Positions 9,970 through 61,825 of a stretch of DNA of 64,000 nt are shown here, in pieces. Both the position numbers and the translations under genes were made by a program. Each line of letters opens with the position of its first letter. The first letter of the stretch is position 1. This stretch comes from Selaginella moellendorffii (lineage: Eukaryota > Plantae > Lycopodiophyta), in the NCBI RefSeq assembly GCF_000143415.4, contig NW_003314261.1:868001-932000 (forward strand), in the 5' to 3' direction. The notes under the pieces are model-generated. The model was given only the letters and a program-made list of their open reading frames with translations. It had not been told where the DNA came from and did no database searches.

Positions 9970-11240
9970 CATGGAAGATTCATTGCGTGAAACCAAAAGG
10001 GCCAGACTGGATCGGGGAAACTGAGCGTCTTCGATCAAATGCCCGAGTGGAAGCTTGTCTCTCGGAACTCAATGCTGGCGGGGCTGGGATCCAACGGGGA
10101 GGTTGCGGCCGCGGAGGAGATGTTTGAGCTGCGAGCCGGAGGGGAACTCGATGATCGCGGCCTACGCTCGCCACGGGAGCTTCTCTCGAGCTCTGAGCTT
10201 GCTCAAGCGGATGGACTTGGACGGTGAGCCTCCATACCCTACGTGGATCACCATCCTCGACTGCTGCGACAATCTCCACCATGGAAGTCTTCTCCACAAA
10301 AAACTGGAGCTCTCGCTTGATCTCCGCTTGGACGTAGACTTGAGTTGCCTGCTCATCAACATGTATGGGAAATGCCGCAGCTTGGAAGGCGCTCGCAAGT
10401 CCTTCGAGAAGAGCTCTGCCACCACCAGTGTCAGATCCTGGACTGCCTCGGAGCGTTCGTGGCAAACGACTCAAGCCGGAGAGCGATCAAGAGCTTCCAC
10501 AAGATGGTACTAGAAGGCGTCCACTTCGACAAGGTGGCGGTGCTGAGCGTCCTGGAAGCCTGCTCTGGAGCCGGAGACTTGGACAGAGCTGCTCCTATAC
10601 GGTTGAGAGAGGCTCGCTCAACATGTACGTCAAGTGTGGGAGATTCGAGCAGTCGAAGCTCGTCTTCGATGCCTTTCCGGAGAAGACCCTCGTGTCATGG
10701 ACGTCGATGGTGTCGAGCTATGCCGGGAGCGGACGCTCTGCCGAGGCGCTGAAAGCTTTCAAGCTCATGGACTTGGCCGGCCTGAGAATGGACGGTGTCG
10801 CTCTGGCTTGCATCTTCGATGCGTGCGCGGCCTTCACAGCTCTCTCGGACGGCAGCGCTGTCTACTCGAGCGTCGAGGCGAGCGGCGAGATGCTCGATGT
10901 CACTGCTGGAGCAGCCGCCATCAACATGTATGGAAAATGCGGAGATGTGTCGAGCGCGGCGGAGATCTTCTCGCAGGACGGGGCCTGGGAGTGGAGTTTG
11001 ATGCTCTGCACGACCACAGTGGCGGCCTTTGCTCGAAACGGACATGGCCGACGAGCTTGCGAGCTGTTTGAGTTGACTGAGCGTCAAGGACTAGAACTGG
11101 ACGTTGTCAGCTTCACCACCATTCTTGCTGCGTGTAGCGCTGCCGGGCTGCTCCACGATGGTCACGGGTACTTTGTTTCCATGAGAGGGGACTATGCTCT
11201 CGCTGCCACCATGGATCACTACGTTTGCGTCATCTCATGA
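9970..11240 (+). pseudogene. PLS-class PPR pseudogene (multiple frameshifts, 3' truncated)
   Basis: PPR motifs (NSMIAAYARHG, INMYGKCRSLE, NMYVKCGRFE, SFTTILAACS, DHYVCVI) are spread over overlapping ORFs in different frames. It stops abruptly after HYVCVI. Confidence 0.88.
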
Positions 11241-11960
11241 GCTAGACCGGACCACAACGCTTGTTTATGCATGGCCGCAGACGCACCTTGCAGGAAACGC
11301 CTACGCTCTAGAGCAATACGTGCCTGCAAAAACACGCAAGTTCCAACAATCTATCCACGAACACTCCACCTTTGTCACGGCAAGGAGTGCTGATGCATGT
11401 GAATTTTGCGTGATGAACTCCGTGAACGACGCTGGCAAGGGGTTCTCGGCAACATCCGCTGGGAAGTTCCGTCGATGAACTTCTCTCAGAGCGTGGGCCG
11501 AGAGCTGCCATAATAGCTCCACAAATCTAGAGAAGGAAAAAACGAAAAAAACTCAATCATAGGAACCACGGAGGCAAAACAAGACCCACCTCTGACCACA
11601 GCATGGAAACCCGAGAGCTACTCCGAGGTAAAGCCCCTTGAGCCTCTAGCTCGTTGATAAGACCCTGGACAATCTGGAAAGAAAGAAATTTCTTTCCAGA
11701 AACACAGCGAAAGAATGCGTATTACTGTTTCCGGAAGTCGCGAGACTGTGCCGCATCGAAAATCGGCCAGACACCGGCGAAATCCTGTGAGATCGAGCGT
11801 GAGCGCCTCAAATCAACCTACATTCTCGCCGTCTTCCCCACCTTGGTGGCCAGCGATAGCAGCGCCTCGCCGACTCGCGGATTGCAGCACCTTGCCCTAG
11901 AATGCTGGCATCCAGAGCAAGCATCTCCGTCTCCTTGTCGCGGATCACATCCTCCTTGGA
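11219..11960 (-). pseudogene. AUG6: Augmin/HAUS6 subunit 5' fragment pseudogene with introns
   Basis: Exon translations [71 protein letters not shown] and [11 protein letters not shown]...[10 protein letters not shown] match the plant AUG6 N-terminus as I recall it. There is a frameshifting deletion near 11603 and truncation after AHEMT. Confidence 0.85.
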
Positions 11961-12073
11961 GCGTCTCCCTAGCAAAGACTCAGTGCAAAGCCAAAGAGCT
12001 GGCCAAATTTAACCTAAATTTAATGATAACTCCCATTAAATGAGAAAATAGAGGTTTAACGGGAGGAATGGTT

Positions 12074-12120
12074 TTTTTAATCGGGGCCGTTCGATCTGTT
12101 GGATCCGACGGCTGTGAGGC
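12074..12120. promoter_or_regulatory. Paired MSA-like elements between AUG6 pseudogene and formin
   Basis: GCCGTTCGATC...GATCCGACGGC is an inverted pair resembling the MYB3R-bound MSA core (YCYAACGG). A homologous copy lies at 48508-48554. Confidence 0.5.
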
Positions 12121-12398
12121 CCCTTCTCCGGCGCTCAATGTTCTCTCTCCAGGAGAGGCGGGATTAAACTTAGGTACCGGATCAGATCTCTGGGAGCTCC
12201 TAGGGTTCCTGGGTTTCTGTCACACGGCGGATGAGCTTACTGGCTATGGCGCCGATCGATATCAGGCAAGTCGAGGCAGGGATTTTGATGCGCTACGGGC
12301 TCGCGATGGCCGCATTGAGCTGAGATCACAGCCTGTGTGATCGAGGTGAAAATTCTCTGGGGCGTGGAGAATCCAGGCACTCGTCATTGCATGGGAGA

Positions 12399-15300
12399 AT
12401 GTCGCTTTTCCGCCGATTTTTCTACAGGAGGCCCCCCGATGGGCTCCTGGAGATATCCGAGAGGGTTTTTGGTAAGCACTCGCTCGCCCTCGATCCATTC
12501 CAATCTCCATTCCCAGCGCATTGATCCATTCTTTTGTGAAATCCAGTCTTTGACTCGTGCTTCTCCACGGACGTCTTCGAGGAGGAGACTTACAAGCTCT
12601 ACTTGCGCCAGATCGCGATGCAAATCCACGAGCAGTTCCCCGATTCGTCCTTCCTCGTCTTTAACTTCCGGGAGGGCGAGAGGAAGAGCCAGCTGACAGA
12701 GATGTTATCGCAATACGATATGACGGTGATGGACTATCCACGCCAGTACGAGGGCTGCCCGATTCTTCCCATGGAGATGATCCATCACTTCCTGCGATCC
12801 AGCGATAGTTGGCTCTCGCTCGAGGGGCAGCAAAACATCGTCCTGATGCACTGCGAGAGGGGGGGATGGCCGCTGCTGGCGTTCATTCTCGCCAGCTTTC
12901 TCATCTACAGGAAGATGTACACGGGCGAATTCAAGACGCTTGATATGCTCCACCGGGAGGCTCCCAAGGGATTGATGCAGCTGCTCACTCCGCTCAATCC
13001 GATGCCATCGCAGCTGAGATATCTCCAGTACGTTGCTAGAAGGAACAACTCTCCAGAGTGGCCTCCCCCGGATCGCTCGCTCAGCCTCGACTGCCTCATT
13101 CTCAGAGTGGTGCCAGCTTTCGATACCGAGGATGGATGCCGGCCCCTCGTCCGGATTTATGGAAGAGATCCCCGATCGAAAGCAGGGAACAGGACGACGA
13201 GGATGCTCTTTGCCTTGGGAAAGAAGAGCAAGTCTGTCCGGCATTATCGACCGGTAAGGTGGTGAGCTTGTTTTCTTTCTCTTGCTTTGATCAGTAACGC
13301 TCTTGTGTGTTCCAGACAGATTGTGATGTGATGAAGATCGATGTACAGTGTGCCGTGCAAGGGGACGTGGTTCTCGAGTGCATTCACTTGGACTTGGAGT
13401 CGGACCGGGAGGAGATGATGTTCCGGGTCATGTTTAACACGGCGTTCATCCGCTCCAACATCCTGATGCTCAACCGGGACGACATTGACATACTCTGGAA
13501 CGGGAAGGAGCGCTTCTCCAAGGACTTCCGAGCAGAGGTAAGGAAGCAAAGCTGAACCAATTTTGGCAAAATCAATCTTTTCCTTTTAGGTGCTTTTTGG
13601 CGAGACGGATGGATTTTCGTCCCCTGTGGCGCCTGTGCCGTCGCTGATGGAAGAGAAAGGTGGCTTGCCGATGGAAGCTTTTGCCAAGGTCCAGGAGCTC
13701 TTCAGTAGCGGGGACTGGTTAGACGGTGGCGGAGACGCGGCATTGAAGTTCCTCCAGCAGCTGACCACGGTTGGCAATGGATTTGAGGACAGGAGACTTC
13801 CGATGGATCGAGCAGCACTAGCGGCAGTGGACGACGAGTGGACACTTATTTCCAGCAGCACTACCTCCTCCACCATCGCCACCGCGACACCCCTAACCGA
13901 CGATCAAAACGGGACAAGTCCAACGTCATCGTCTAACCCTAGCTTCGCACCAGGTACTCCTTCGCCACCTCCACCTCCGCCTCCTCCACCACCTCCGAGG
14001 TTGGCTATTTCGCGTTCTCCACCTCCTGCTCCACCACCACCACCACCACCACCAGTAGTTTCTGTTGCCGGTCGTCCCCCTCCTCCGCCTCCTCCACCAC
14101 CTCCGTTCAAGCTTCCAAGTTCTACTGCAAAGCTGCCACCGCCACCGCCGCCTCCGCCTCCTCCGCCGCTGCCTCGAGGGAATTCAACTGCCCCACCGCC
14201 GCCGCCTCCGCCACCGTTGCCTAGAGGGAATTCAGCTGCACCACCTCCTCCGCCTCCTCCACCGCCACGTGGCAATACCGCTGCGCCACCTCCACCGCCA
14301 CCACCTCTTCCACAAGCTGCGAGGCCTCTAGCTTCATCAAGCTCACCACCGCCGCCGCCACCGCCGCCGCTGCCTCCACCGGGAATGCGAGGCACTCCTC
14401 TGCCTCCACCTCCGCCTTTTAAAGGACCGCCTCCACCTCCGCCGCCTCCTCCCGGATCAGCAGCTCCGCCGCCACCGCCGCCTCCTCTCGGTGTGAAGTC
14501 ACCATTGCCTGGTGTACCACCTCCTCCGCCACCTGCATTGGGGAGAGGACGAGGTAGTAGTCCTTTGACACCTTCGCCTCCTGGTGGTCGAGGCCGAGGA
14601 CAGGTTGCTGGTGCTTCGGGTCTGGCATCTGCTACGCCGAAGAAGACCTCTCTGAAGCCATACCACTGGGTAAAGGTTACACGGGCTATGCAGGGCAGTC
14701 TATGGGCGGAGAGTCAGAAGCAGGAAGAGCAGTCAAGGTGTGTCTTGTGGTCTTTTTCTTTTGTTACATGTGCTCACAATTTCTTTTTGTTGCGTGATAG
14801 GCAACCTGAATTTGACATGAACGAGCTAGAGAGCCTCTTCTCGGCCGCTGTTCCGAATGCTGCTGCGGGTGGTGACAGAGCGGGTGGTCGTCGTGCATCT
14901 CTAGTTCCCAAGCAGGAAAAAGTGCTCCTGGTAAGCTGCCTTTTGTAGTCGAAGCGGAGGCCTCACTATTGTTTTATTCAGATTGAACATAGACGGGCGT
15001 ACAATTGCGAGATAATGCTGACAAAAGTGAAGATGCCACTGCCAGAAGTTGTTGTAAGTTGCTCTCTACATTATGCAATGTGGTTTTTACTTGAGCACTC
15101 AGAAAGCAATACTAGCGTTGGATGGGGCAGTACTGGATGTAGATCAGGTTGATAATCTGATCAAGTTTTGTCCAACAAAGGAGGAGATGGAAACGCTCAA
15201 GGTTTTATTTCCAGATATGATCTTGCCATCTAACTTACACGCTGGTGGTTTTGCAGAACTACACGGGCGATAAAGAATGCCTGGGCAAATGTGAGCAGGT

Positions 15301-16596: not shown

Positions 16597-16753
16597 CCAT
16601 TTAAGTCGGAGATTTTGAAAGGGGGTCTTTGTTTGTACATTCTTCCGGATAGATTATTGACACGAAGAAGATTTTTGAAGAAAAGAAATTCAATGATACG
16701 TTTCCAAGGCCCTACTAAGAACGTTAGGGTTTTCATGCAGAAGGGTTTAGAGC

Positions 16754-18307
16754 ATGGCAGAAGAAGAAGCACGATACAGGGTAAGCTCCTTTGCTGCGCG
16801 TGCAGTTTTACAAGTGCTCCGAGAGCCTCAAGGAGGCAATATGCTATGGAATGATGGAGATGGGCCTTTGTTGAATGCCAAGAATTTCCTTGGTAGACCA
16901 TTTATGCCGCCGCTCATCAGCAGCAACGTGCGGGTGGACACCTTCACTGATTGGGGAGTTGGACGGGAGTTATTCCCATCCAAGCTCTATGTATGGCACA
17001 ACATCCATGAGCTGGTCGATCGTTTTGTTGCAAGAGAGATCAATGATACGGAGGAGGTCCTTTTTGTGCCCAATCGGGATCGACAAGTTCATCCTGTGGA
17101 TTCTCCAGGTGCGATGGCGAGAGTCCTCAGCTCCCAACTCGTCCAGCGGCTGCCGGGGGCAATCCGTCGAGTAGGCTTGGTTCCCGAGGTTAATGTACTG
17201 TTGACAGGCAGTGATCGCAGCGTGAAACCTCGAGGTTGTCTCGTGGGAGTAATTCATTTGGAGCTTGAAGGGCTGTGCGTGCGAGACATTGCTACAAATC
17301 TGGAACGTGGCTCTTCCTTTAGAGAAGCTGTGGAGAGGGTTTATTGTTACTGTGAGCAGTGGAAGACAGACTATGCAGTGATTATTGGTGCATGCCATCT
17401 GTGGTTTTGCGTCAGGCATGGCTACAATGGCTTTGCTATAGCTGAACCGATGAAGATCTCTGAGGTGCCAATGAAGCACTTCTGGTACGTTATCTTCTCT
17501 AGTGTGGTCAATGCCACTGAGTTGCCTCTGCAAGACGATCAGGACAATTGCGAGGAGCTCACAATGGTGCCTCCCCCTCATCATGTGATGCTGCCAAAGG
17601 ATTTCAACAAGTTTGTCAAGCGCAACATGAAGCACTTGGCAAGCGAGTTGGCATACATCTCCATGGCCAAAGTGCACAAGAAGCTGAAGTCTTGGAGGTT
17701 TGGGGAGTTTTATAGGGACTTTCGGCAGGGAATGGTGCTGTCACCAAATGTGGCAAGAGCTGTGTACAGAGGATCTGAGAAGGTGGTGGTGAAAATAGTG
17801 GACATGTCTCAACCAGGTTCAAAGCTAGGTGCTGCTATGTTGTTTGTTCGGGAGATCCTCATGTATTCCAGGCTCAAATCCATGCAGGGTCGTGGAGTTC
17901 CCAAGCTCTTAGAGTATGGCGTCCTCAATGGGGATATGTTCTCAGTGATTGTCATGTCCGACGAAGGTGATAGCACTCTTCCTTCCCAAACATATCCCCA
18001 TCTCAAAGAGCCTGCCACAAGGGTGTTGCGAGAGATCTACCAGTGTGGTGCTTATCATGGAACTTTTGAGGCATCAGATGTTGTGGTCTCTGTGGACGGT
18101 GATCTGCCACCCAAAGTTAGCATCGTGGGCTTCTCCTTGGGCGGCATTGTCTCGATTGAGCATAATCCTTGGAAGGATGAGCTGAGTTGTGTCATGTCAA
18201 CTATCGGGATCACAGAGGATTCATCATCGGAAGAAGATGGCGCTGAGGATGTGGAGGAAGGCCAGAGTGAAGATTACTATTCTAGCGTGGAAAGCCCCTA
18301 TAGGTAG
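16754..18307 (+). CDS. Intronless orphan: degenerate REase-fold + pseudokinase protein (copy 1)
   Basis: 517 aa ORF with a paralogue at 46953-48470. The C-terminus has kinase-like VVVK, REILMY..L..MQGRGVPKLLEYG, YHGT and IVGFS. The middle has ERVYCYC...YAVIIG...WFCVR. Confidence 0.8.
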   Translation: MAEEEARYRVSSFAARAVLQVLREPQGGNMLWNDGDGPLLNAKNFLGRPFMPPLISSNVRVDTFTDWGVGRELFPSKLYVWHNIHELVDRFVAREINDTEEVLFVPNRDRQVHPVDSPGAMARVLSSQLVQRLPGAIRRVGLVPEVNVLLTGSDRSVKPRGCLVGVIHLELEGLCVRDIATNLERGSSFREAVERVYCYCEQWKTDYAVIIGACHLWFCVRHGYNGFAIAEPMKISEVPMKHFWYVIFSSVVNATELPLQDDQDNCEELTMVPPPHHVMLPKDFNKFVKRNMKHLASELAYISMAKVHKKLKSWRFGEFYRDFRQGMVLSPNVARAVYRGSEKVVVKIVDMSQPGSKLGAAMLFVREILMYSRLKSMQGRGVPKLLEYGVLNGDMFSVIVMSDEGDSTLPSQTYPHLKEPATRVLREIYQCGAYHGTFEASDVVVSVDGDLPPKVSIVGFSLGGIVSIEHNPWKDELSCVMSTIGITEDSSSEEDGAEDVEEGQSEDYYSSVESPYR

Positions 18308-18405
18308 TTCTTGCTAGATTTCATTGAGTTGAATTCACTAGTTTTTCTTGGTAGATTTCATTGAGTTGGATTTGCTCTTGCACGGCACACTGTACATCGA
18401 TCTTC

Positions 18406-18589
18406 TGTTATGAAATGGGGATACCCAGCCTTGTGAGCGCAGCAGCGCTCCATGCTGGGTCCACCTTTATTGCGGAAGACGGATCAAGAACAGAATGTGT
18501 CGGGCGTGATCACCTACAGAACCTAAACGGATGTGTCCCTTCTGCTGACGTGGCATCCCAGCTTGAGATTGCGGCTTAAGTCCTCAACA
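18406..18589 (-). repeat. Copia 3' LTR
   Basis: Reads identical to 22245-22428 and adjoins the PPT. Confidence 0.95.
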
Positions 18590-21500
18590 CTCCCACTCGA
18601 GCTAAGCTGGGATCAGCCTCGAGCAACTGTACACCAAGAGCTTGGACATGCTTGGAGAATGCAGCTAGGGGCAGAGCTTTTGTGAAAACATCTGCCACCT
18701 GATCTCCCGTCGCACAATACACTAGCTCCATTGTCTCCATGGCAACCTGCTCACGAATAAAATGAAACTGTACCTGTATGTGCTTGGTACGTCCGTGATA
18801 CTTCGGGTTCTTCGTCAAGGCAATTGCTCCCTGATTATCACAGAAGATAATCGTTGGAGTCTTCTGTGGATAATATACTCCACTCAATAGTTGCCTCAGC
18901 CAAACACACTCTTTGGCTGCTAAGGTAGTGGCCACGTACTCAGCTTCGGTGCTTGATAGTGCAATTGTTGGCTGCCTTTTACTGCACCAAGTAACTGCTC
19001 CACTACCAAGGCTGAACATATAGCCTGAAGTGGACTTCCTCTTGTCAACTTCACCAGCCCAATCAGCATCTAAGTATCCAACGAGCTGAATACCCCTAGG
19101 CTGCTGCTTGTAAACAAGACCATAGTTGGCAGTCCCCTTCAAGTATCTGAAAATCCGCTTTACTGCTAACCAGTGCTGGTAGCCAGGATTTTCCAAGTGC
19201 TGTGAAACTGCTCCCACTGCATAGGCTATGTCTGGCCTCGTACACACCATCAGGTACACTAAGCTTCCCACCATCTGCCTATATGGGATCCGCTTCATAT
19301 GTTCCTCCATAGGTGTGGTTGCTGGGTTCAGCTCACTGAGTTGAAACCTCTGAAGCACGTCCAGAATGTACTTCTTCTGAGACATCTGAATCACTCCCTT
19401 CCTCCTGTCTCGGAAGATCTGAATGCCAAGGCAGTAGTGAAGAGGTCCCATGTCAACCATCTTGAATCGGCACCCCAAATCCAGCTTCAACTGCTTCATG
19501 GTAGCACCTTCACTTGAGAAAAGGATGCAGTCATCCACATAGAGAGCTATCATGGCTCGAAATTCTCCCACTCGCTTCAAGTACACGTTACTGTCAGCTG
19601 AAGTCTTGGAGAACCCCAAACCCAAGAGATAAGCGTCCATTTTCTCGTACCAGGCCCTGGGTGCTTGTTTAAGGCCATATAAAGCCTTCTTCAACCGGCA
19701 CACTAAATGTTCCTTCCCTGGAACAACAAAGCCCTCTGGTTGCGAGATAAAGACCTCCTCATGTAGATCTCCATTCAGAAAAGCTGTGGTGACGTCCATC
19801 TGCTCGACTTCCAAGTTTTCTTGAGCAGCAATGTTCAGCAACATCCTGATCGATGCATGTTTCACCACTGGTGAAAATGTTTCTGCAAAGTCCACTCCTT
19901 CTACTTGAGAAAATCCTCGAGCTACAAATCTGGCCTTGTAACGATCAATAGAGCCATCTGGCTTATACTTGATCCGGAACAGCCACTTTGTACTCACGAT
20001 TCTTCTGCCTGTAGGAAGCTCCACCAAGTCCCACGTTTCATTTTCCATCAAAGATTGATACTCTAGGAAAATTGCATGCTGCCACTCTGCTGCATTTGGA
20101 CCAGCCAAGGCTTCTTGCAGGGTCTTGGGTACTGTGGCTTCTGCTTGGTGAAAGAGTGCTAGAAAGTCGAGTTCCATGTCCTCAGAAGGAACTTCCTCCT
20201 GCTGCTGGGACGGTGAGCTTGCAGCATAATAAAATGCTGCTGAGGTTACTGGAGGTGGCTCAGATGCACTGCGATCACGAGCTGCTCTGGCTTCAACTCT
20301 AGAAGCCTCAAGAGCCTGCTTTAATGCCACATCCTCTCTGTACTGCTGTCCTTGTTCAGTCAAGACACGAACACGACTGGATCTACGAGGTGCTGCTGCT
20401 TCCTGCTGCTGGCTGCTTTCCTGCTGCTGGCTGCTCTCACTAGAGCTGCCTTCCTCGAAATTGAGAGAAGGTGAGAGATCTGAGACACTCCTTGGAAGAG
20501 TTCGGCCTGCCCTGGGAGGAACTTGAGCCACGACTCCACCTCCACCTGTAGCTGCTCCGCCTGAGTGTGCACGCTGCCGTCGAGAGGCATCTTCCTCCTC
20601 GCTGTCGCTATCCTCAATTAGGGTTTGCTTACCACTAATGAGTAACGGCATCTGCTGCGAGGTGGTTGCTAGCTGGTTCTTGGTGTTGTACATCTTAGAC
20701 TCGTCGAAGATGACATTCCTGCTCGTGATCACCTTCCTGGTGTTCAGGTTGAAGAGCTTGTAACCCTTCATCTTGCTTGCATAGCCAAGGAGAATGCACT
20801 TCTCACTTCTACTGTCCAGCTTCTTGGGCTCGTCCTTGAGTGCATAAGCTACACACCCAAAGATCCTGAGATGGCTCACGTCTGGTGCCTTCCCATACCA
20901 CACCTCATAAGGTGTTCGTCCCTTGACAGCAGAAGTAATCAGCCTATTCCTCAAGTAGGCTGCTGTCTTCACAGCATCACACCAAAAGAAATTTGGCATG
21001 CCTGCATCTTGCAAGATCGCTCGTGCCATCTCCACAAGAGTTCGGTTCATCCTCTCAGCCACGCCATTTTGCTCAGGAGTTGAAGGCACTGAAAGTTGCC
21101 GCTTAATTCCAGCTTGCTCACAGAACTCCTTAAAGGCGTTAGAGGTGAACTCTCCACCACCATCACTTCTCAGCATCTTGATTTTTCTGCTTGTCTCAAG
21201 CTCCGCTTGCAGCTTGTAGACCTTGAAAGCTTCAAAGGCCTCTGACTTGTGCAGCAAAAACTTCACTGCTACCATCCTTGAAAAATCGTCGATGAATGTG
21301 ACAAAGTATTTCTTCTTTGTCCTTGACATGGTCTGCATTGGGCCACATAGATCAGAGTGTACCAGCTCCAGGACATCCTTCCCTCTTTCACTTACACCTG
21401 AGCGAAATGGAAGGCGATGCTGCTTACTGAGGACACAAGGCTCACAAAATCCAGCTGATGATGGAGCAATGTTCAGTCCTCGGACAAGTTGTCCTCTTGC

Positions 21501-21640
21501 TAGCTGCTGTACTCTCTTGATGGAAGAGTGGCCTAATCTCCTGTGCCAAGTGTCTAGTGTAGCTGGTTTGTCTTCCACGCTGCTACTGAGCATTAACCTC
21601 TCAGGATACACCACTTCAGCATTCAGGCAATAGAGCCCGT
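18576..21640 (-). CDS. pol: Copia pol (integrase, RT, RNase H), open frame, protease absent
   Basis: WHRRLGH...CEPC, HSDLCGP, RSDGGGEF, QNGVAERMNR, YKARFVARGF, LYVDD, DADWAG, CDNQGA and ADVFTK. The first in-frame ATG is at 21593. Confidence 0.92.
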
Positions 21641-21659
21641 GTGAAGAACGATCCTGAAG

Positions 21660-22230
21660 ATGGGGAGTGTGCGCGACGCCATAGAGATCTTTGATGGCAA
21701 GGATTTCAGCGGATGGCAGGAGCAACTCGAGTACTACTTTATGCAGAAGGAGCTGTGGCCAGTGGTCGACGGTTCCTGGACGCGCCCTCCCACAACGGAC
21801 AAGGCTGACCGCAAAGAGTGGGATGGAAAGAACATCAAGGCCTTGGGCATTCTAGGCAGAGGCCTGGGCAAGGTGTTCAGTTGCCATCTCGACATCACGA
21901 AGACTGCGCACGAGAACTGGGAAAACCTGAAAGCAACCCTCGGAAAGGAGAATGAGACCACATTGCTGGACTTAGAGACAGAACTCGGTTCTGTAAGACA
22001 GCATGAAGGTGAGTCCATTCAAGCCTTTGTTGGAAGGTTGAGGAAGGTAGCAAGCCAGATCGCACGCATCACGAAGACACCAGTGAGTGAACCGAAGCTC
22101 AAGTCGGTTGTCATCAAAGGCGTGGCGAAGTATCTTCTGACAACAGCGACTACTCACTCGTCAAAGAAATTTGACGAAATGGTCCTTCAGTTGAAGTCAG
22201 CAGAGAACTTGATGGAGACCAATGAGGGAG
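21660..22230 (+). CDS. gag: Copia gag (N-terminal/capsid part), antisense to its own element
   Basis: MGSVRDAIEIFDGKDFSGWQEQLEYYFMQKELWPVVDG...EWDGKNIKALGIL...TAHENWENLK...QHEGESIQAFVGRL is a Copia gag signature. No zinc knuckle. The frame stays open through the PBS and LTR to 22418. Confidence 0.9.
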
Positions 22231-22244
22231 TAGCTCTGATACCA

Positions 22245-22428
22245 TGTTATGAAATGGGGATACCCAGCCTTGTGAGCGCAGCAGCGCTCCATGCTGGGTC
22301 CACCTTTATTGCGGAAGACGGATCAAGAACAGAATGTGTCGGGCGTGATCACCTACAGAACCTAAACGGATGTGTCCCTTCTGCTGACGTGGCATCCCAG
22401 CTTGAGATTGCGGCTTAAGTCCTCAACA
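22245..22428 (-). repeat. Copia 5' LTR
   Basis: Adjoins the tRNA-iMet PBS and is followed by TSD TCTTC. Confidence 0.95.
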
Positions 22429-23579
22429 TCTTCATCACATCACAATCTGTCTGGAACACACAAGAGCGTTACTGACCAAAGCAAGAGAAAGAAAACAAGC
22501 TCACCACCTTACCGGTCGATAATGCCGGACATCTTTCCCAAGGCAAAAAGCATCCTCGTCGTCCTGTTCCCTGCTTTCAATTGGGGATCTCTTCCATAAA
22601 TGCGGCCCCTCGTCCGGATCGAAAGCTGGCACCACTTTGAGAATGAGGCAGTCGAGGCTGAGCGAGCGATCTGGGAGTGGCCACTCTGGAGTGTTGTTCC
22701 TTCTAGCAACGTACTAGAGATATCTCAGCTGCGATGGCATCGGATTGAGTGGAGTGAGCAGCTGCATGGGAGCCTCCCGGTGGAGCATATCAAGTGTCTT
22801 GAATTCGCCCGTGTACATCTTCCTGTAGATGAGAAAGCTGGTGAGAATGAACGCCAGCAGCGGCCATCCCCCCCTCTTGCAGTGCATCAGGACGATGTTT
22901 TGCTGCCCCTCGAGTGAGAGCCAACTATCGCTGGATTGCAGGAAGTGATGGATCATCTCCATGGGAAGAATTGGATGTTGCTGAACATTGCTGCTCAAGA
23001 AAACTTGGAAGTCGAGCAGATGGACATCACCACAGCTTTTCTGAATGGAGATCTACATGAGGAGGTCTTTATCTCGCAACCAGAGGGCTTTGTTGTTCCA
23101 GGGAAGGAACATTTAGTGTGCAGATAATTCATCTTTGAAAAATTACTGGATCCTTGTAGCGGCGTGGATAATCCATCACTGTCATATCGTAGTGCGATAA
23201 CATCTCTGTCAGCTGGCTCTTCCTCTCACCCTCCGGGAAGTTAAAGACGAGGAAGGACGAATCGGGGAACTGCTCGTGGATTTGCATCGCGATCTGGCGC
23301 AAGTAGTGCTTGTAAGTCTCCTCCTCGAAGATGTCCGCGGAGAAACACGAGTCAAAGACTGGATTCACAAAAGAATGGGTGAATGTGCTGGGAATGGAGA
23401 TTGGAATGTATGAGGAGAGATTGGAATGTAACACATTTGGACTAAAAGCTTCAACTTGAAAGGTTGAGAGTAGGAGTGGAACTCCCAACAAAGAGCTCGA
23501 GGAACAAGCACGAAACAAGCAATAAGCGAGGCTCCAAAAAGGGACCCAAAAGGACCAACACATGACACGTGGAAGAGTG

Positions 23580-24030
23580 CAAGATGGACCCGAGTTGAAG
23601 TCCGAGATGGAGTCCGAGATAGACCGAAGTGGAGTCCAATATGGACCCAGATGGAGTCCGAGATGGACCCGAGGTGGAGTCCGATATGGAGTCTGATATG
23701 GACTGAGATGGAGTCCGAGATGGACCTGAGATGGAGTCTGAGATGGAGTTCGAGATGGACCCGAGGTGGAGTACGAGATGGAGTCTGATATGGACCGAGA
23801 TGGAGTCCGAGATGGACCCGAGGTGGAGTCCGAGAAGGACCCGAGATAGAGTCCGAAGTCGAGACCGAGACTGAGACTGAGCCTGACACTGAGACTGAGA
23901 CCGGGACTGAGATCAAGACTGGGACCAAGATTGAGATCGAGACCAAGGCCGAGGCCGAGACCGAGCCCAAGCCCGAGTCCGAGTCCGAGTCTGAGTCCGA
24001 GTCCGAGTCCGAGTCCGAGTTCAAGTCTGA
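23580..24030 (+). repeat. Minisatellite in LTR-B: GATGGACCCGA/GATGGAGTCCGA units, then (GAGACC)n/(GAGTCC)n
   Basis: Directly visible; homologous arrays at ~35025-35410 and ~38180-38620. Confidence 0.9.
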
Positions 24031-24293
24031 GAGGGTGAAAGCCCAAAGCGTTCGTTTCCCAGACCTTGGGGGGTTTGGTGAGCTCCAAAAGTATAGTAAG
24101 GGGGAGGACTGCAGTGGAACCAGTTTGGCCAGGAAAGGCTAGTTTGGCCCAGGAAGGCTGTATCCAGTGTTGGGTGATGAGCTGCCCACTGGGAAGTCCA
24201 AGACTAGAGTGAACACAGGCCGACAAGCAGGTTGGCTTGATGAAGTGTTCAAGAGCCTTCTCTAGTTCCCCCGGGAGATCGATTGGCCGATGC

Positions 24294-25448
24294 TGTAGCG
24301 CACGTGGTTTTGACCCTTTATCCTATGGTGATTTACCATAGGATAACACCACGAAGCGGAACCTAAACCCTCTTTGTGCCACGTGACAGATGCCACGTGT
24401 CACATGCCACGTGTCCATGCCACGTGTCCATAGGAACCTGAGGTTCAGGGCCTTGGGCCACTGAACGAAGAAACGGTGCCAAACTCCCAAGCGTGGAGCC
24501 AAGGAGTGATGGAACCGGACCACGGAGCAACTCCCGAGCATATGGCCCAAGGAGCAAAGGGACAGGAGCCTGGAGCAACTTGGAACAGTCCTGGAGCAAC
24601 CAGCATCCCAATGCCAGAACTAACACGCAAAACGGAGCCAAACAGAGCCAAACGGAGTTTAGCGCTATTTCGGCATACCGGTGGCCTAACGTGAGGATAT
24701 GGGTACTCCACCAGCTAGCATGGAATGGAACTTGGGCTTAGACCCAAGCCGGACGCAGAACAAGGACAGGCACGCAAGCGGGAGCTAGACTATGCCTCAG
24801 GTTGGTCGGCCATGCCCGACCTACCCACTATCCCTACTATACATTTGGAACCTCCCACAGCCCCCCCCCTTTGAGGAACACACGCTTTGGGCTTTCACCC
24901 CAAGCCTCCTTTAGTACCAGGAGTTAGTCTCTGGGACAAGCTCAAAACTTATTAAATATGGAATGTCCTTAGATTGTGAATTTGGACACGGGACGAACAC
25001 TATTGTGTTCGGGCCGATCTCTACATTCCGTAGATATGCCAAATGAGCAAATCTAGACACTTTCCAGAAATAGCATTTAGGACCGAAATGAGACTAACAC
25101 AAAGGGCATGATAGCGAGGGTGTTTGGCAAACACGGTAAGCTATCATCGAGCGATATTGAGGGACCAAGCTCAATATCGCGGGGGTTCCCAACACTAGCA
25201 AGTGCAAGTCAACGAATGAGTTTCTCTAACCAGGTCAAGTATGCTTGACTAAATAGACACTTAGGAATTCCTTCCTTATGCTCATCTGGTCAAGTGCACA
25301 CGCGAGGATTAGTTTCTCAACTAGCTTAGGCAGAGACTGATAACGGGTCCAGCAATACCGACTTCTTGCCATCGTGGCAATAAGGTAAGAGTGTCCGTAA
25401 GGACTAGCCGACAGGTAACTTTTGATACCCGAAGTCACATTCGCGACA
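24294..25448 (-). repeat. Element C 3' LTR (with ~195-bp internal deletion)
   Basis: Colinear with 30341-31678 except for the missing ~30606-30802 segment and one extra GCCACGTGTC unit. Confidence 0.93.
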
Positions 25449-30340: not shown

Positions 30341-31678
30341 TGTAGCGCACGTGGTTTTGACCCTTTATCCTATGGTGATTTACCATAGGATAACACCACG
30401 AAGCGGAACCTAAACCCTCTTTGTGCCACGTGACAGATGCCACGTGTCACATGCCACGTGTCCATAGGAACCCGAGGTTCAGGGCCTTGGGCCACTGAAC
30501 GAAGAAACGGTGCCAAACTCCCAAGCGTGGAGCCAAGGAATGATGGAACCGGACCACGGAGCAACTCCCGAGCATATAGCCCAAGGAGCAAAGGGACAGG
30601 AGCCCGGATGTAAGCTCCTGAGTTTGGACTTCCCGGGAGGTCACTCAGCCCAGTACTATTCAAACCCAAGGACGCTTAACCCCAAATATCCCAAGACCCT
30701 TAACCGATTGGAAAAGGGGGTGCACTCTTGTTCATGGGCCCTTTCCCTCTATATTTGAACCCCATGGATCGTCTCTCAAGTCATTCCCTTTGGTTGCTTA
30801 CACCGGAGCGACTTGGAACAGTCCTGGAGCAACCAGCATCCCAATGCCAGGACCAGCACGCAAAACGGAGCCAAACGGAGTTTGGCGTTATTTCGGCATA
30901 CCGGTGGCCTAAGTGAGGATATGGGTACTCCACCAGCTAGCATGGAATGGAACTTGAGCTTAGACCCAAGCCGGACGCAGAACAAGGACAGGCACGCAAG
31001 CGGGAGCTAGACTATGCCTCAGGTTGGTCGGCCATGCCCGACCTACCCACTATCCCTACTATACATTTGGAACCTCCCACAGCCCCCCCCCCCCCCCCCT
31101 TTGAGGAACACACACTTTGGGCTTTCACCCCAAGCCTCCCTTAGTACCAGGAGTTAGTCTCTGGGACAAGCTCAAAACTTACTAAATATGGAATGTCCTT
31201 AGATTGTGAATTTGGACACGGGACGAACACTATTGTGTTCGGGCCGATCTCTACATTCCGTAGATATGCCAAATGAGCAAATCTAGACACTTTCCAGAAA
31301 TAGCATTTAGGACCGAAATGAGACTAACACAAAGGGCATGATAGTGAGAGTGTTTGGCAGACACGGTAAGCTATCATCTAGCGATATTGAGGGACCAAGT
31401 TCAATATCGCGGGGGTTCCCAACACTAGCAAGTGCAAGTCAACGAATGAGTTTCTCTAACCAGGTCAAGTATGCTTGACTAAATAGACACTTAGGAATTC
31501 CTTCCTTATGCTCATCTGGTCAAGTGCACACGCGAGGACTAGTTTCTCAACTAGCTTAGGCAGAGACTGATAACGGGTCCAGCAATACCGACTTCTTGCC
31601 ATCGTGGCAATAAGGTAAGAGTGTCCGTAAGGACTAGCCGACAGGTAACTTTCGATACCCGAAGTCACATTCGCGACA
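30341..31678 (-). repeat. Element C 5' LTR
   Basis: Next to the PBS; TG...CA ends. Confidence 0.93.
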
Positions 31679-34600
31679 GATGCTCCCAATCCAAGTGTGG
31701 GTGGCACTACCTACTTGGATAACAGGCGTGGCTCAACGGAACCTCACTCTAATCCCATGGCTAGAGCACCCAAAGGCAGAAGGCAGGGAGAGTATCCACA
31801 AGGCTTGTGTAAGGCCATGGTGTTCCAAAATGTTGCCCCAAGGTCCCAGACTGTGAAAAGGAAGTGGAACCGTCCTATAGTGTAGAGACCAAGGATACGG
31901 TCATGTGAGGAGAAAGTCCCAGAGGACCATGGGACTTAGTGGTCGGGCAATATGTGCAAACACGACCATGGGTAGAAAGGGACTTGGTGGGGAACAGAAA
32001 GGGGATATTGGGGAAGGCTATCCTCCATGTCTATGGGCATCCTAAGGGTGCTAAGGAGTGGATCTGGGATGATCACTCATGGACGGATAGCCCAGTCTTT
32101 GAGAGATGGGACTGTGATGTAGGTGGTGTTAAACCACCGATGTGACCAAGGTGAATGGGCATGGCCTTAGCGTAACGGGCTGATATGTTAGTGGTACCTT
32201 AGGGTGTCGGTCATGGGATCGGACATATGTAGCACTTGGACCAAGTGCAAAGGTTGACTGGTGGGAATGCCATTCTCGAGGCTAGCAAGCCCAAGTCCGA
32301 AATAGGACTTATGGAGGTTGTGAGTGAGACTTCTCCAAGTGGTCGAAGGTGTGGTTAAGTGGCTAAAGTAGAATGGAAAAATTAGTCGCTTACAACTTGG
32401 TATCGGAGCTGTTCCTTAGTCTGACTTTTATTGGTGCTCAAGTATATCACCACTTGTGTTGGTATCGGAAGGTCCTAGGAGTGAGCCTATCCTTGAGGAG
32501 TAGCAAGTCGGGAAGATATGGCTCTCCACTCAAGTTCATGTGTGAACTTGTAGGTGAGGTGGTGGATAGAAAAGGGCCAATAATAGAACGACTTTGGGAT
32601 CTTGGGAACAATGTAAAGTTTTCCTCATTGAGTTGAGGATGTGATCCAGATGAGTGTTTGACTCAGCAAACTAACTAATGTAGTTGTGGTCACGGGGAAG
32701 ATAGAGACTCCAAAAACGATAAAGGAGTCACAAGATTATCCTCATATAGTTGAGGTTGGTGCTCATGAATGTGAGACCAGAATTAATGACCATGGGAGGT
32801 CAAATATGAAAGAGGACACAAATCCTTGAAATGGTAGCTGGGGCTACCTCTAATAAATGCTTGAACAACCTAAGGAGTTAGGGGTGTACTCAGAGGATGA
32901 GTTGGTATTCTCATCATGTGGACAAGTACAAAAGGTTGCCCCACGAGAATAAATCAAGTGTCAGAGTAACACTTGCAAAGATGGTCCTTGTGAGTAGGAC
33001 CTGAATACAAGAAGTTGTATTTCAGTGAGCTAGCACCTCAAAAGTAGAACTTCACGGGTCATTGGATGATAAAGTCCAAAAAGCTGGATGACTCAAATAG
33101 AGTCAAGGAATAATCTTAAAGGATTGATGGAAAAATTTGGATTGAGGTGTGTGGTGCCCCATGAAGGATGCGGGGGGGGGAATAATAGAATCCAAGTATG
33201 AGAAAAGAGGGTATCTCATCGATGGCAAAATGTGCTATGCTAAAGTCATGGGAAAGAGTTTCCTGGAAGAAGATAATTTTGACACAAAGTTGTGCATGAA
33301 CTCTATGATGTAGTGCTAATAGATAGTTAGTATGAGAAACACTGTATTAGTTTTGGCAAAGACCTAGACACTAATAAGTAGTGTTATAAAGATAGGCTCA
33401 TGGAGCCAATGGTGTGACCAATGGAAATGGGAATGGCATAGCCTAAGCTGGAAGGCATGTGGTTAGAGTATGGTGACCTAAATAATGATGGAGGTGTGGA
33501 AGCATCAGCAAAGAGTTGTAAGGCTTGATAACTAAGAGGAAACTAAGCAAAAGGTGCAAAATAATTGGTTAAGTTAGTAAGAAGTAACTACCTAAGACTT
33601 CTTATGGGGATAAAGAAGTTAGATATACCCTTATGGGGGAGAAACTACTTATATTGTGAAATAGTAAGTCAATGTCATAAAGAGAATGCTCATTGCCAAA
33701 GAAGGCCATCATTGGGATACGTAAACGCTCTAAAACACCAGGAAGTGGTATTTGGTGTCGTGAAAGCATTAGATAAGGCCCAAGGGATTAAGTCCCTAGC
33801 AAATGATGGGTAGGAGGTGCTATCACAAATGTCCAAGGCTCTAAAGATGGGAAAAATCTGTCTATCTGATTTGGACAAAGCCAAAAATGGGATTTTGGCA
33901 AGGCTAGTGATGGGCATATAGAGGCCCATAAATAGCAACGTTAATCCCAGTGTGTGGGATTATAAGGTGTGCATGCCCAAATTGAGGAACCACTCCCTAA
34001 GCTATTGGGTAAGTTCATCCCTATGAATACTTGCTAAAGCATGGTAGAAGGTGCAAAGTTATCCTCTTAGTTTGGAGGAGAATAACCAAAAGAAACATAT
34101 GAGGCCAAAAGGCAAGTAGTATTGGGATGGAATTGAACCATAGAAATCGAAAGACATAACCAATGGTGGTTATGCAAATTGGGAGTGGAAAATCAAAAGG
34201 GTGCTCAAGAATGTTGCTACTAGCAATTGCAATGCCATGAAGAGTTTAAAATATGGAATTATCCATGTTAGACCATATGGTGAGTAGGGAGCTTGCAAAG
34301 GAGAAACCTTAGCAAGCTAAGGAACAGAGTTCCTTAAAGGTTCTCGAAGACAATTCTAGGTAGATAAGTACCTAGAAAGCCAAGTGTAAATGGTTTCTAG
34401 AGCGCGCAAAATCAGAGTGGCACAGCAGAAGCGTGGTCTTGAAGTTGCCTATGAGGTGAGGCTATCAAAGTTGGGAAAGTAGTCCCCGAGTGTTCAAAGA
34501 GAGGGCTTTGAACAAAAGTCAATGGTTAAGGACTTTCACGCTTACGCATGAACCATATCACGCTGGCAGGATGACTTGCTAATCGAGATTGGCAAGTCAG

Positions 34601-34787
34601 GGGAACAAATCCCCTAGTTGAAGGTGCTAACTTCAAAAGGGGTGGCCCATGGGGCCGAGCATGGAGGAGTCCATGCATGATCACAAACTTGTCAAGTGAG
34701 AAGACTTCACAGTGCGGAGGAACTAAGTTCTTAAGCTGTGATCTATAGCACGTTTTGAGTATATGTTGGTGCACCGGCATGGAGAGT

Positions 34788-59845: not shown

Positions 59846-61825
59846 ATGGATGACGCTAAGCGCGCAGTGAAGCACGGGTATGTCCATTCGATTCTTCGAT
59901 CAAACGCTGCAATGCTGGGGGAAATTTGTGAGTAACGGGAGGTTTTGATTCAATCTAGAGCCGAGAGTGTCGCCGAGGGGGCCGAGAACGCGGCCCAGGA
60001 TGTCAAGGAGGCTTTTGGAGCGTCCCAGCCTGGATTGTCGACGCATGCTCCTCAGGAAGTCCAGCAGCAGCAGGGATCTGGATGGTTCCAGAAGGGATTT
60101 CTACTGCCAGAGGACGAGAGGGCTGAGGATTCCAGTCACGGGCAGCAGAAGATCGATGAATCGAAGCACAGGATCGATGAAGCCAAGCACAAGACCGAGG
60201 AACATGGCAAGGGTTTGCTCGGTGCGCTGGGAGAAATCGCCACGAATATCAAGAACGCTGTCGGGGGCGTCACAGAGGACGCCAAGGAACAGGGACGTCA
60301 TATGGCGGACAGCGCTCGAGAGACTGCTGGGGAATACCAAGGAAAAAGCGAGGATCAAACTGACCGAGCCAGAGAAAGAGCGGACGACACGAAAAAATCC
60401 GCTAGAGAGACCAAAGACGATATCAAGGATCGAGCTGGCAAGACAGTGGACGATACAAAGAGGTCCGCGAGAGAAACCAAGGATGAGATGACTGACAAAG
60501 CCAAGAGAACCACCGATGAAACAAAGAAGTCTGCGAGAGAAACCAAGGACGAGGTGACAGACAGAGCGAAGAGGACCACCGATGAAACAAAGAAGTCCGC
60601 CAGAGAAACCAAGGACGAGGTGACAGACAAAGCAAAGAGGGTCGCCGATGAAACAAAGATGTCTGCGAGAGAAACCAAGGACGAGGTGAAAGATAGAACT
60701 CAGAGAACGGTGGACGATACGAAGAGGTATGTGAGGGAAACCAAGGACGAGGTGACGGACAGAGCTCGGAGTGCTGTGGATGAAACCAAACACAAGGCTG
60801 GAGACGCAGCGGACAGAGCTTCGGAGCAAGGCAAAGGCCTGTTTGGAACACTCGGTGAAATGGCTAGTAACTTGAGGAACGCTGTGGCCGGGACTACCGA
60901 GGACGTGACGCACGATAGAACCGAGCTGGTTGCCAACAGAGCCGATGAGCTGAAGGAGAAAGGCAAGAATGCGGCGGATGACTCGGTTGACGAGACAAAA
61001 GACGAGGCTTCTGAGCGAGGCAATGCTCTCTTGGATCGTGTCAAAGGCACCGCGGAAGACACACGTAACAAGGTGTATGAAACGAAGGATGAGGCTGCAG
61101 CAAGAGGGACCCGGGTGGTGGACAAAGTCAAGGATACGGCGGGGATCTTGAAGCAGAAAAGTGAAGACGCTGTCGAAAATGTAAAGCACAAGACCGATGA
61201 GACGGCAGATCGAGGCAAAGGTGTACTGAATTACGTCAAGGGTGTTGTCACAACGCCAACAGCCGGAGAGCACCAACAACATCGGCCACAGAAAGCAGAG
61301 GCCCCTCAACCACAGCAACGTAACCTTCGAGAAAAATACGAGGAGGCAAAGAGCAAAGCCAGAGACAATGCCGAGAAAGTGAAGGAAAACACCAAGCAAC
61401 GCATGGAGGCGGCGACTGAAGCTGGCAGGGGGATCCTGGACGCAATCGGGGATGTGGCTTCCGAGTTCACGGACGTATTACAGGGATCGACTCGTCATGT
61501 ACAGTCCGTGTCGGCTCGTGAGGTTGACGCACAGCGCGCAATGTCGGCAGCTCAAGGCAGAACGCAAGTGCCTCCCAATCTCGCCAAACTCAACGACGCT
61601 GCCCGCGAGGAGACCGAGCGGATTGTAGCTGAGCAAAAAGCGCTGGATGATGCTGCTGCCACCGCATCGTCTTCACCACCACCAACTAAAGAGCAGGACA
61701 AGAGCGTCATTGAATCCGTGGCTGAGTGGGTCGTGGACAGGAAGCAGCAGCTTACAGACGAGATGACACAGCGCGTAGTCGAAGCAGAGAAAGCCAAGCA
61801 GGACGAGGAGAGGAACAAGCGCTAG
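59846..61825 (+). CDS. Late embryogenesis abundant (group 3-like) hydrophilic protein; intron 59878-59958
   Basis: The ATG exon MDDAKRAVKHG splices in frame to AESVAEG. The protein is rich in K/E/D/T/A/R with 11/22-aa periodicity, and ACGT boxes lie upstream (59746, 59779). Confidence 0.85.
60380..60790 (+). repeat. 66-bp (22-aa) coding tandem repeat, about 6 copies
   Basis: Unit approximately DETKKSARETKDEVTDRAKRTT. Confidence 0.9.

Follow-up and report, generated by a model that had tools for sequence, protein, structure and literature searches.

We describe here a nuclear gene of Selaginella moellendorffii at positions 16754..18307 (+) of a 64,000-nucleotide stretch of contig NW_003314261.1 (positions 868,001 to 932,000; hereafter the window), whose 517-residue product appears to have kept two enzyme-like domains while losing most of the residues that would make them enzymes. 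Its C-terminal part is very likely a protein kinase-like domain in pseudoenzyme form, and its N-terminal part is probably a nuclease-fold (restriction-endonuclease-like) domain. The reading that we favour, with moderate confidence, is that this protein, a member of a Selaginella nuclease-kinase family, is a double pseudoenzyme that would act by binding rather than by catalysis, with competent relatives as its partners. What is new is that a family of nuclease-kinase modules has a branch in a host genome whose catalytic sites have degenerated; earlier literature already mentions Crinkler-type proteins in land plants. The gene had been singled out by an earlier prediction made from the sequence alone (hereafter the original prediction), whose claims are taken up below beside the evidence that bears on them.

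The gene, hereafter copy 1, is an open reading frame (ORF) of 517 codons plus stop, with an ATG start and no intron. A stop codon lies immediately 5' of the ATG, so that the open stretch starts only one codon ahead of it (at 16751) and leaves no longer in-frame reading. An intact paralogue, copy 2 (46953..48470, -; 505 residues), lies 30.2 kb from copy 1 and carries the same substitutions in both domains. The two proteins are 73% identical over their full length; the DNA is 80% identical from the exact ATG to 36 nt past the stop codon (18343 on the copy 1 side), beyond which the flanks are unalignable. A third intact sequence is the allele of copy 2 in the reference assembly, at 10554-12077 of locus L001 (GL377625.1:556351-578430), where the plain ORF encodes 508 residues. 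An intact single-exon gene among intron-rich genes, with an intact paralogue 30 kb away, is what the original prediction had described, and the ORF list, the neighbouring genes and the identity between the copies agree with it.

Comparison of the two copies by the Nei-Gojobori method gave 0.134 nonsynonymous (dN) and 0.489 synonymous (dS) substitutions per site. The resulting dN/dS is 0.27 (bootstrap 95% confidence interval 0.21-0.36, maximum 0.42 in 1000 resamples), and the L001 allele against copy 2 of the window gave 0.21-0.24. By part, the ratio between the copies was 0.14 at residues 321-480, which hold the kinase-like domain, and 0.32 over the N-terminal 290 residues; dS itself was lower in the C-terminal half (0.33 vs 0.64). 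Both copies are under purifying selection, which is strongest on the kinase-like domain. With 517 codons open in three sequences and a dN/dS of 0.27, a chance ORF is ruled out in favour of a real, constrained gene, kept in the genome as had been predicted. Over roughly 200 bp the L001 allele also matches copy 1 (90-93% identity) better than it matches copy 2 of the window (82-86%), and this copy-1-like tract points to ongoing gene conversion between loci 30 kb apart.

Five parts can be told apart along the protein, all read from the + strand. Residues 1-64 (16754..16945, directly preceding 16946) form a weakly conserved N-terminal region, without conserved columns in the family alignment and with a predicted local distance difference test score (pLDDT) below 50. 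The N-domain follows at residues 65-257 (16946..17524) and is PD-(D/E)xK-like without the canonical residues, as judged from an AlphaFold2 model, hhalign comparisons and residue mapping. A partly helical linker of residues 258-324 (17525..17725; pLDDT about 30), whose length varies across the family, connects it to the truncated protein-kinase-like domain of residues 325-483 (17726..18202), which was delimited by PDB profile matches, Foldseek, hhalign and a table of the catalytic columns. The protein closes with an acidic disordered tail of residues 484-517 (18203..18304; pLDDT about 30), Asp and Glu making up 30% of the last 40 residues.

Sequence searches with the window protein alone (Pfam, PADLOC, NCBIfam, PDB) returned nothing meaningful, and it was profiles and models that identified the C-terminal domain. 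Run against the PDB, a profile of 14 family sequences matched 577 kinase sequences at E<=10, with PAK6, TP53RK/Bud32, Rio2 and Cdc7 as the best matches (E 1.6e-4 to 7e-4; TP53RK 2e-4, Rio2 3.9e-4). In these alignments the VVVK stretch takes the place of the VAVK strand, K347 coinciding with the Lys of the PAK6 VAVK, and the H-G-x...V-G-F region falls on HRD...DFG. The full-length AlphaFold model has a pLDDT of 48 overall and 56-77 in its C-terminal part, and served for kinase matches only; with it, Foldseek found at least 500 PDB matches at E<=1e-3 (best 1e-6, over 165-185 columns), and all of the 50 matches listed are kinases, as expected from the kinase-like region that the original prediction had marked out. 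The domain comprises the N-lobe, the catalytic loop, the DFG strand and one helix. Its C-lobe is incomplete: the protein ends 56 residues past the DFG column, and 34 of these belong to the acidic tail. Together these comparisons support the placing of the domain, on modelled structure and profile similarity, in the protein kinase-like superfamily fold as a truncated form.

The substitutions in this domain are as the original prediction had read them, with the beta3 Lys and alphaC Glu kept, HGT in the place of HGD and GFS in the place of DFG. K347 (beta3 Lys), D350 (the Asp at K+3) and E367 (alphaC Glu) are invariant in all Selaginella members; K347 and E367 are so in 21/21 sequences of the Selaginella family and of the chytrid/aphelid family described below, and D350 is invariant across both. 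In copy 1, copy 2 and the allele alike, the HxD Asp column holds T437, the catalytic-loop Asn column D442 and the DFG Asp column G459 (G-F-S), and a pattern search found no GxGxxG glycine-rich loop in the window copies. Among the paralogues the HxD Asp is retained in P0002/13, P0005 and P0007/15, the Asn in P0005 and P0007/15, and the DFG Asp only in P0007/15 and their neighbour at locus L004. Because some paralogues keep the full set, the loss in the clade of the window genes is a derived state. The dead sites, although present in both copies as claimed, and in the allele, are not peculiar to this gene, most family members being degenerate too. We consider it very probable that the domain is a kinase domain and that it has become a pseudoenzyme.

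The nature of the N-terminal domain was less evident and was approached through more distant relatives. The family profile matched a chytrid protein, P0012, by hhalign at E 3.8e-18 over window residues 187 to 473 (the end of the N-domain, the linker and the kinase), and a search with P0012 in turn gave full-length relatives of 509-547 residues from Entophlyctis luteolus (P0020), Obelidium mucronatum (P0021), Amoeboaphelidium occidentale and A. protococcarum (P0032 and P0034-P0038) and environmental assemblies, all annotated as hypothetical proteins only. These proteins define a previously unnamed chytrid/aphelid nuclease-kinase family of the same size and layout. In length (about 520 residues), in the order of the domains and in the truncation of the kinase they agree with the window protein, and the homology runs over both domains. 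Both groups have W..F at the domain start, a helix-strand block (..Y.. / YG..T / W.F), VxxKxxD, E..Y..L..QG..P.L..G and an H-G-x loop.

The window protein shares about 17% identity with them, no longer has the catalytic residues and finds no match among Pfam models. The chytrid/aphelid proteins, by contrast, carry E..PD..ExK..QxxxY and HGD(L)R..N..IDFG almost without variation, and their kinase passes the Pfam Pkinase threshold (model positions 6-152 of 263), the only Pfam model to do so. Matches of the relatives to Bud32/RIO/Kdo-type kinases in NCBIfam and Pfam all fall below the family cut-offs. Nearly invariant in the chytrid/aphelid N-domain are an acidic residue in a helix, G-D-P-D, V-E-F-K-T-P-W, an E-Q-x-Y-x-Y-M helix that fits Q...Y, R-Y-G-x-L-T and T-W-F; in the kinase they are V-V-F-K-T-x-D, E..Y..L..LQG..IP, H-G-D-L-R-L-P-N and I-D-F-G, the end of the protein following 15-25 residues later. 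By our own reading of the motifs, the E..PD..ExK..QxxxY signature would be that of a PD-(D/E)xK nuclease of the RecB-like type, fused to a minimal kinase.

Aligned by hhalign, the Selaginella and chytrid/aphelid families match with a probability of 99.7% (E 1.2e-26, 347 columns, window residues 76-466). The N-domains match each other (E 3.5e-11, probability 97.2%, 166 columns) and so do the kinases (E 8.4e-22, probability 99.4%), and cross-controls of N-domain against kinase were not significant (E 0.17 and 0.43). Since each domain matches separately and the cross-controls are negative, the whole two-domain unit is homologous.

When the chytrid/aphelid N-domain is mapped onto the Selaginella proteins with hhalign, copy 1 has V146-N147 at the PD columns (copy 2 has L-S there), E170-L-E172 at the ExK columns and R195 at the Q column, and it keeps the Tyr, Y199. 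The window copies thus have neither the Asp nor the Lys at those columns, in agreement with the original prediction, which had reported a middle segment without PD and ExK. Across Selaginella the P-D is kept in four lineages, two lineages have Glu there, and the Lys of ExK is found in none. The exact equivalences at PD and ExK are of low confidence, because the loop between them shifts from one alignment to another; no alternative alignment yields an Asp/Lys pair or a canonical nuclease site. The AlphaFold2 model of residues 65-257 (pLDDT 67, predicted template modelling score 0.71) shows, one after the other, a helix, two strands (the first starting at the PD columns, the second running up to the ExK columns), a long helix and three further strands, which is the order expected for an alpha-beta-beta-beta-alpha-beta core. 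In the PDB, Foldseek found weak matches to this model, archaeal Hjc resolvases being best (E 0.04-0.3), then RecU, a protein with a restriction endonuclease (REase) domain, SwaI and YaeQ, mixed with JAMM proteins. A profile of the N-domain alone from two environmental relatives matched nothing in the PDB or Pfam. The PD-(D/E)xK fold proposed by the original prediction therefore stands on homology to a family that bears the signature and not on a fold match, its structural matches being weak; on these grounds we regard a nuclease fold as probable for this domain.

The extent of the family within plants was surveyed by HMMER, with a profile of copy 1, copy 2 and P0001 (the published model of the copy 2 allele) against 1.84 billion representative proteins, every one of which was read. 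Twelve proteins matched at E<=1e-3. Eight are from S. moellendorffii (P0001-P0007 and P0009; 439-533 residues); the remaining four are from a chytrid, an amoebozoan and two environmental sources, one of the latter without look-up. No other plant or alga was among the matches of this search. A word-index protein search with the 14-sequence family alignment, by comparison, did not recover the family's own members. The Selaginella proteins represent at least eight annotated lineages, their cluster mates being alleles of the second haplotype, and share 20-26% identity with the window protein; for most of them the UniProt label is 'protein kinase domain-containing' only, and a literature search found no paper naming these genes. 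Neither member checked for introns has any (P0007 is a single exon and the P0002 locus one continuous ORF). Three members lie within 8 kb of each other at L004 (GL377565.1:6266107-6287459): P0007, with the full canonical set of kinase residues (L004 10001-11353, +), a second full member buried in a 637-residue gene model (11684-12970, -) and a third, fragmentary one (17289-18101, -). The complete kinase set (Asp, Asn, Asp) is kept in P0007/P0015, and most Selaginella members are without the DFG Asp. As far as sequence comparison tells, the survey shows a fast-diverging family which, among the plants in the databases searched, occurs only in Selaginella moellendorffii, and the lineage-specific distribution that had been predicted is confirmed to this extent.

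The survey raises the matter of where the family came from. In a neighbour-joining tree of 362 shared columns, the Selaginella proteins were split from the chytrid, aphelid and environmental ones in 300/300 bootstraps, and the clade of the window genes was joined with P0002 in 240/300. Mean identity is 24% among Selaginella lineages, 49% within the microbial group and 19% between the groups, and P0007 is the Selaginella member nearest to the microbial group (22%). The tree is in keeping with a family that arose once in the Selaginella lineage, then radiated and repeatedly lost catalytic residues. It is compatible both with horizontal acquisition and with ancient inheritance followed by loss elsewhere, and does not decide between them. 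That the family was inherited from early eukaryotes and disappeared from other plants, instead of having come by horizontal transfer from an organism like a chytrid or aphelid, is a possibility of real weight, if on balance somewhat improbable. The Selaginella group stands apart from all microbial sequences and is not nested inside them, and its deep divergence implies either great age or fast evolution. Moreover, where reviews treat their distribution, Crinkler-type proteins are placed in several free-living lineages, land plants included (PMC5289972). Against inheritance, the exhaustive search brought up neither another plant nor an alga, the family sits amid intron-rich genes with both members checked lacking introns, and relatives were found only in zoosporic fungi, aphelids, one amoebozoan and environmental samples. 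With the nearest relatives of the plant family in the chytrid/aphelid group, inter-kingdom transfer becomes a question open to genome surveys.

Among described proteins, the closest in architecture are the Crinkler/CR C-terminal modules, such as that of Phytophthora infestans CRN8, which likewise combine an REase fold with a kinase; the likeness is one of description only. According to PMC5289972, which summarises Zhang et al. 2016, about one-sixth of CR C-termini consist of a nuclease-fold domain with a kinase behind it, and CR-type proteins occur in land plants. The Crinkler kinase CRN8 is thought, in the same account, to dimerise, its kinase-dead form being dominant negative (PMC5289972). 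The original prediction had gone further and called the window gene Crinkler-like. This label is not supported, all the header features looked for being absent. Unlike Crinklers, the window protein lacks the ubiquitin-like (Ubl)/LxLFLAK header and the DWL/HVLVxxP junction: Pfam PF20147 gave no match at E<=10, either in it or in the chytrid/aphelid relatives, a pattern search found no LFLAK motif, and HVL[VI]..P was not found, the nearest being HVML at residue 277 in the linker of copy 1, absent from copy 2. No named Crinkler was retrieved by any protein search, and no named effector sequence was compared directly. The N-terminus of the window protein is charged, with a maximum 12-residue hydropathy of 1.25, and has no stretch that resembles a signal peptide. 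Two relatives of the kinase or of the nuclease-kinase module, P0011 (a Vermistella antarctica transcript, 315 residues) and P0024 (environmental, 543 residues), have N-terminal stretches that look ubiquitin-like by eye, with no match in Pfam; by analogy, these would echo the layout of a Crinkler header joined to a toxin.

Bud32/TP53RK, RIO and Kdo-kinase types, which are among the best matches of the family profile in the PDB and of relatives in NCBIfam and Pfam, resemble the window kinase in their short C-lobe and in having no activation segment. They differ from the window protein in being active and universally conserved and in having no fused nuclease-like domain. A likeness of another kind exists with pseudokinases. 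MLKL and the plant proteins ZED1/ZRK and RKS1 keep the Lys-Glu pair, have lost the aspartates of HRD and DFG and act as switches or scaffolds, and plant decoy pseudokinases also occur in gene clusters. The window protein has the same class of substitutions in a selected domain that stands beside a second domain of effector type, which is a likeness in action and not in membership: no specific relationship to MLKL, ZED1/ZRK or RKS1 was detected, none of them being among the best PDB profile or Foldseek matches.

How such a protein might act can be put together from these observations. The parts conserved best are the kinase N-lobe, the Lys-Glu pair and the Y..L..QG..P.L..G surface, and this suggests a module that folds stably and serves for interaction or the sensing of nucleotides. 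In the double-pseudoenzyme reading, the N-lobe with its Lys-Glu pair would be a folded interaction or switch module, possibly one that holds a nucleotide, and the nuclease-like domain would add another surface, to which nucleic acid or protein could bind. The likeliest partners would be kinase-competent paralogues of the P0007 type or the nuclease-kinase proteins of zoosporic parasites, which the Selaginella protein would modulate or block by entering mixed complexes with them. Mixed complexes are the most economical mechanism, because the family holds kinase-competent members and CRN8, by the account cited, probably dimerises and is blocked by a kinase-dead copy; as an argument from analogy, this particular mechanism is put forward tentatively and is rather unlikely to be right in its specifics. 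Should the general reading hold, the gene would be a clear plant case of a toxin-type two-enzyme module that remains under selection after most catalytic residues have been replaced in both domains. Dead copies beside sister genes that look kinase-competent, all in one genome, form a natural series on why pseudoenzymes persist.

Several points weigh against this reading. The nuclease fold rests on homology and motifs: Foldseek found no PDB match to the N-domain below E 0.001, a viral library gave likewise weak matches, and the loop between PD and ExK was aligned differently between runs. In the collections searched there is no protein model for either window copy, only an older Joint Genome Institute (JGI) model of the allele. 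The binding partners are purely inferred. Finally, acidic residues remain near both sites (E145, E170 and E172 by the former nuclease site, D350 and D442 in the kinase pocket), for which reason unusual chemistry is possible on sequence.

The last of these points can be developed into an alternative in which at least one of the two domains has remained an enzyme through an active site of an unconventional kind, built in the kinase from the Lys-Glu pair with D350, E439 or D442 and in the nuclease from E145, E170 and E172. Some restriction enzymes have an all-acidic site in which a Glu replaces the Lys. The invariance of K347, D350 and E367 across both families, the acidic residues at or beside former catalytic columns and the purifying selection, strongest on the kinase-like domain, would all be in keeping with this. 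However, three canonical kinase positions have been substituted together and the glycine-rich loop is absent. D350 is no substitute for them, since relatives that look active have it besides the HGD/N/DFG set, and the nuclease Lys is kept by no Selaginella member. We therefore think a surviving enzyme unlikely.

A bolder variant of the binding reading holds that an ancestor of Selaginella took up a nuclease-kinase toxin module from a zoosporic parasite of chytrid- or aphelid-like kind, that the module was expanded into a family, and that the dead copies serve as intracellular mimics which bind and neutralise related effectors of these parasites or restrain the plant's own paralogues. We find this improbable, a shade more so than the surviving enzyme; if true, it would give a plant immune or antidote family built from a parasite weapon.

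It is less probable still that a mobile or selfish element carries the gene or left it behind as a relic, and that the family spread by transposition. The family is multi-copy, partly clustered and intronless in two checked members, and copy 1 has a copia-type element directly beside it and long inverted repeats on either side. In the literature as far as PMC5289972 reports it (from Zhang et al. 2016), Crinkler-type nuclease domains derive from transposons. Yet the similarity between the copies is limited to the coding sequence and 36 nt, without flanking terminal repeats; a dS of 0.49 between the copies and 20-25% identity between family lineages speak against recent spread; and there is no transposase, integrase or reverse transcriptase in the unit, the copia element being separate and younger. 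No terminal repeats or target-site duplications were found around either copy. Lastly, a decaying relic that is open by accident, which the missing catalytic residues, the absence of both window copies from the protein models of the collections searched and the degraded look of a neighbouring third locus might suggest, can hardly be reconciled with three intact ORFs of 505-517 codons and a dN/dS of 0.27 that no resample raised above 0.42, nor with the ratio of 0.21-0.24 between alleles.

This third locus is a divergent family member with the nuclease-like domain only, at 49302..50095 (+), head-to-head with copy 2 and recognised by profile matches to the helix-strand block. The original prediction had aligned the middle block of copy 1 with the ORF that begins there (49302-50060). 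BLASTP of the copy 1 protein found nothing in this frame (E 4.3), nor did Pfam, and only by eye are the W..F motif, P-D and E-x-K-T-W seen in the expected order. The link is borne out in part: within 49302-50095 a second ORF, read in a different frame and overlapping the end of the first, contains the helix-strand block, and it matched the chytrid profile at E 2.7e-4 and the Selaginella profile at 1.2e-3 among 1597 six-frame fragments of the window, and by hhalign at E 3.9e-4 and 1.7e-3. The division between two frames is apparently due either to one frame change or to an unrecognised intron. The gene on chytrid contig L002 is also split between two frames, and the pieces of both loci were compared separately and never joined. 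The same fragment is found in the other haplotype (L001). Downstream, no kinase part came to light.

Only one database protein is close, SELMODRAFT_423176 of Selaginella moellendorffii (P0001), at 78% identity. Its locus, L001, aligns with window positions 58431-41235 at 95.6-99.1% identity; accordingly, the window represents either a different assembly of S. moellendorffii or its other haplotype, with P0001 as the copy 2 allele. The published model of P0001 has an extra upstream exon and skips 17 residues that the plain L001 ORF retains. Neighbouring genes include pentatricopeptide repeat (PPR) and PPR-E-DYW genes, a CSC1/RSN1-type channel gene and a formin with a PTEN-C2 exon that ends about 150 nt before the copy 1 ATG. 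Contamination was rejected, as the contig carries typical Selaginella PPR-DYW and formin genes and the loci are present in two haplotype assemblies. An ORF at 42768-44330, considered by its size as a candidate paralogue, was likewise rejected, being a PPR protein. It belongs to a PPR-E-DYW editing-factor gene (42768-45430, +) that reads as two ORFs, 42768-44330 and 44324-45430, with an overlap of a few bases; the reference haplotype annotates the gene as one protein of 865 residues.

A short tandem duplication stands right after the stop codon of both copies (18308-18372 and 46879-46952), with units of 28-30 nt at a spacing of 37-44 nt; in the 3' flank of copy 1 (18308..18372, +) the unit is 28 nt and the spacing 37 nt. 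Directly 3' of copy 1 lies the copia-type element (18406-22428), whose 184-bp long terminal repeats (LTRs) are 100% identical, marking it as a young insertion. Its pol-like ORF (integrase, reverse transcriptase) is on the - strand and its gag-like ORF on the + strand, and a 149-bp piece of pol is repeated in inverted orientation just outside (22973-23121), so that the element looks rearranged. The body of the formin gene and copy 1 are enclosed by an inverted repeat of some 0.9 kb with 90-93% identity (12488-13361, +, vs 18377-18405 plus 22429-23415, -). Its left arm spans the formin PTEN-C2 exon, and its right arm begins 70 nt past the copy 1 stop and is split by the copia-type insertion. This repeat may be the trace of a rearrangement that put copy 1 in its place.

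A 45-bp element occurs at 12076-12120 (+) and 48508-48552 (-), 87% identical with an exact 18-mer, and also at L001 10444-10461; two matches were seen in 0/100 shuffles. It lies 38 nt upstream of the copy 2 ATG and upstream of the formin that precedes copy 1; none of the other family loci fetched has it. Either a promoter element or a remnant of the duplication could account for it. Elsewhere in the window, dispersed repeat families that are 79-96% identical have long ORFs without a Pfam match (23428-24294, 34784-36397, 37943-39620, and 24294-25448 / 30341-31678 / 31679-32395). An ORF of 626 residues at 59945-61825 (+), unrelated to copy 1, has internal repeats, weak apolipoprotein/YtxH-like matches and the look of a repeat protein of the late embryogenesis abundant (LEA) type. 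The part of the window from 26 to 42 kb stands out by strong GC and AT skews and a low GC content.

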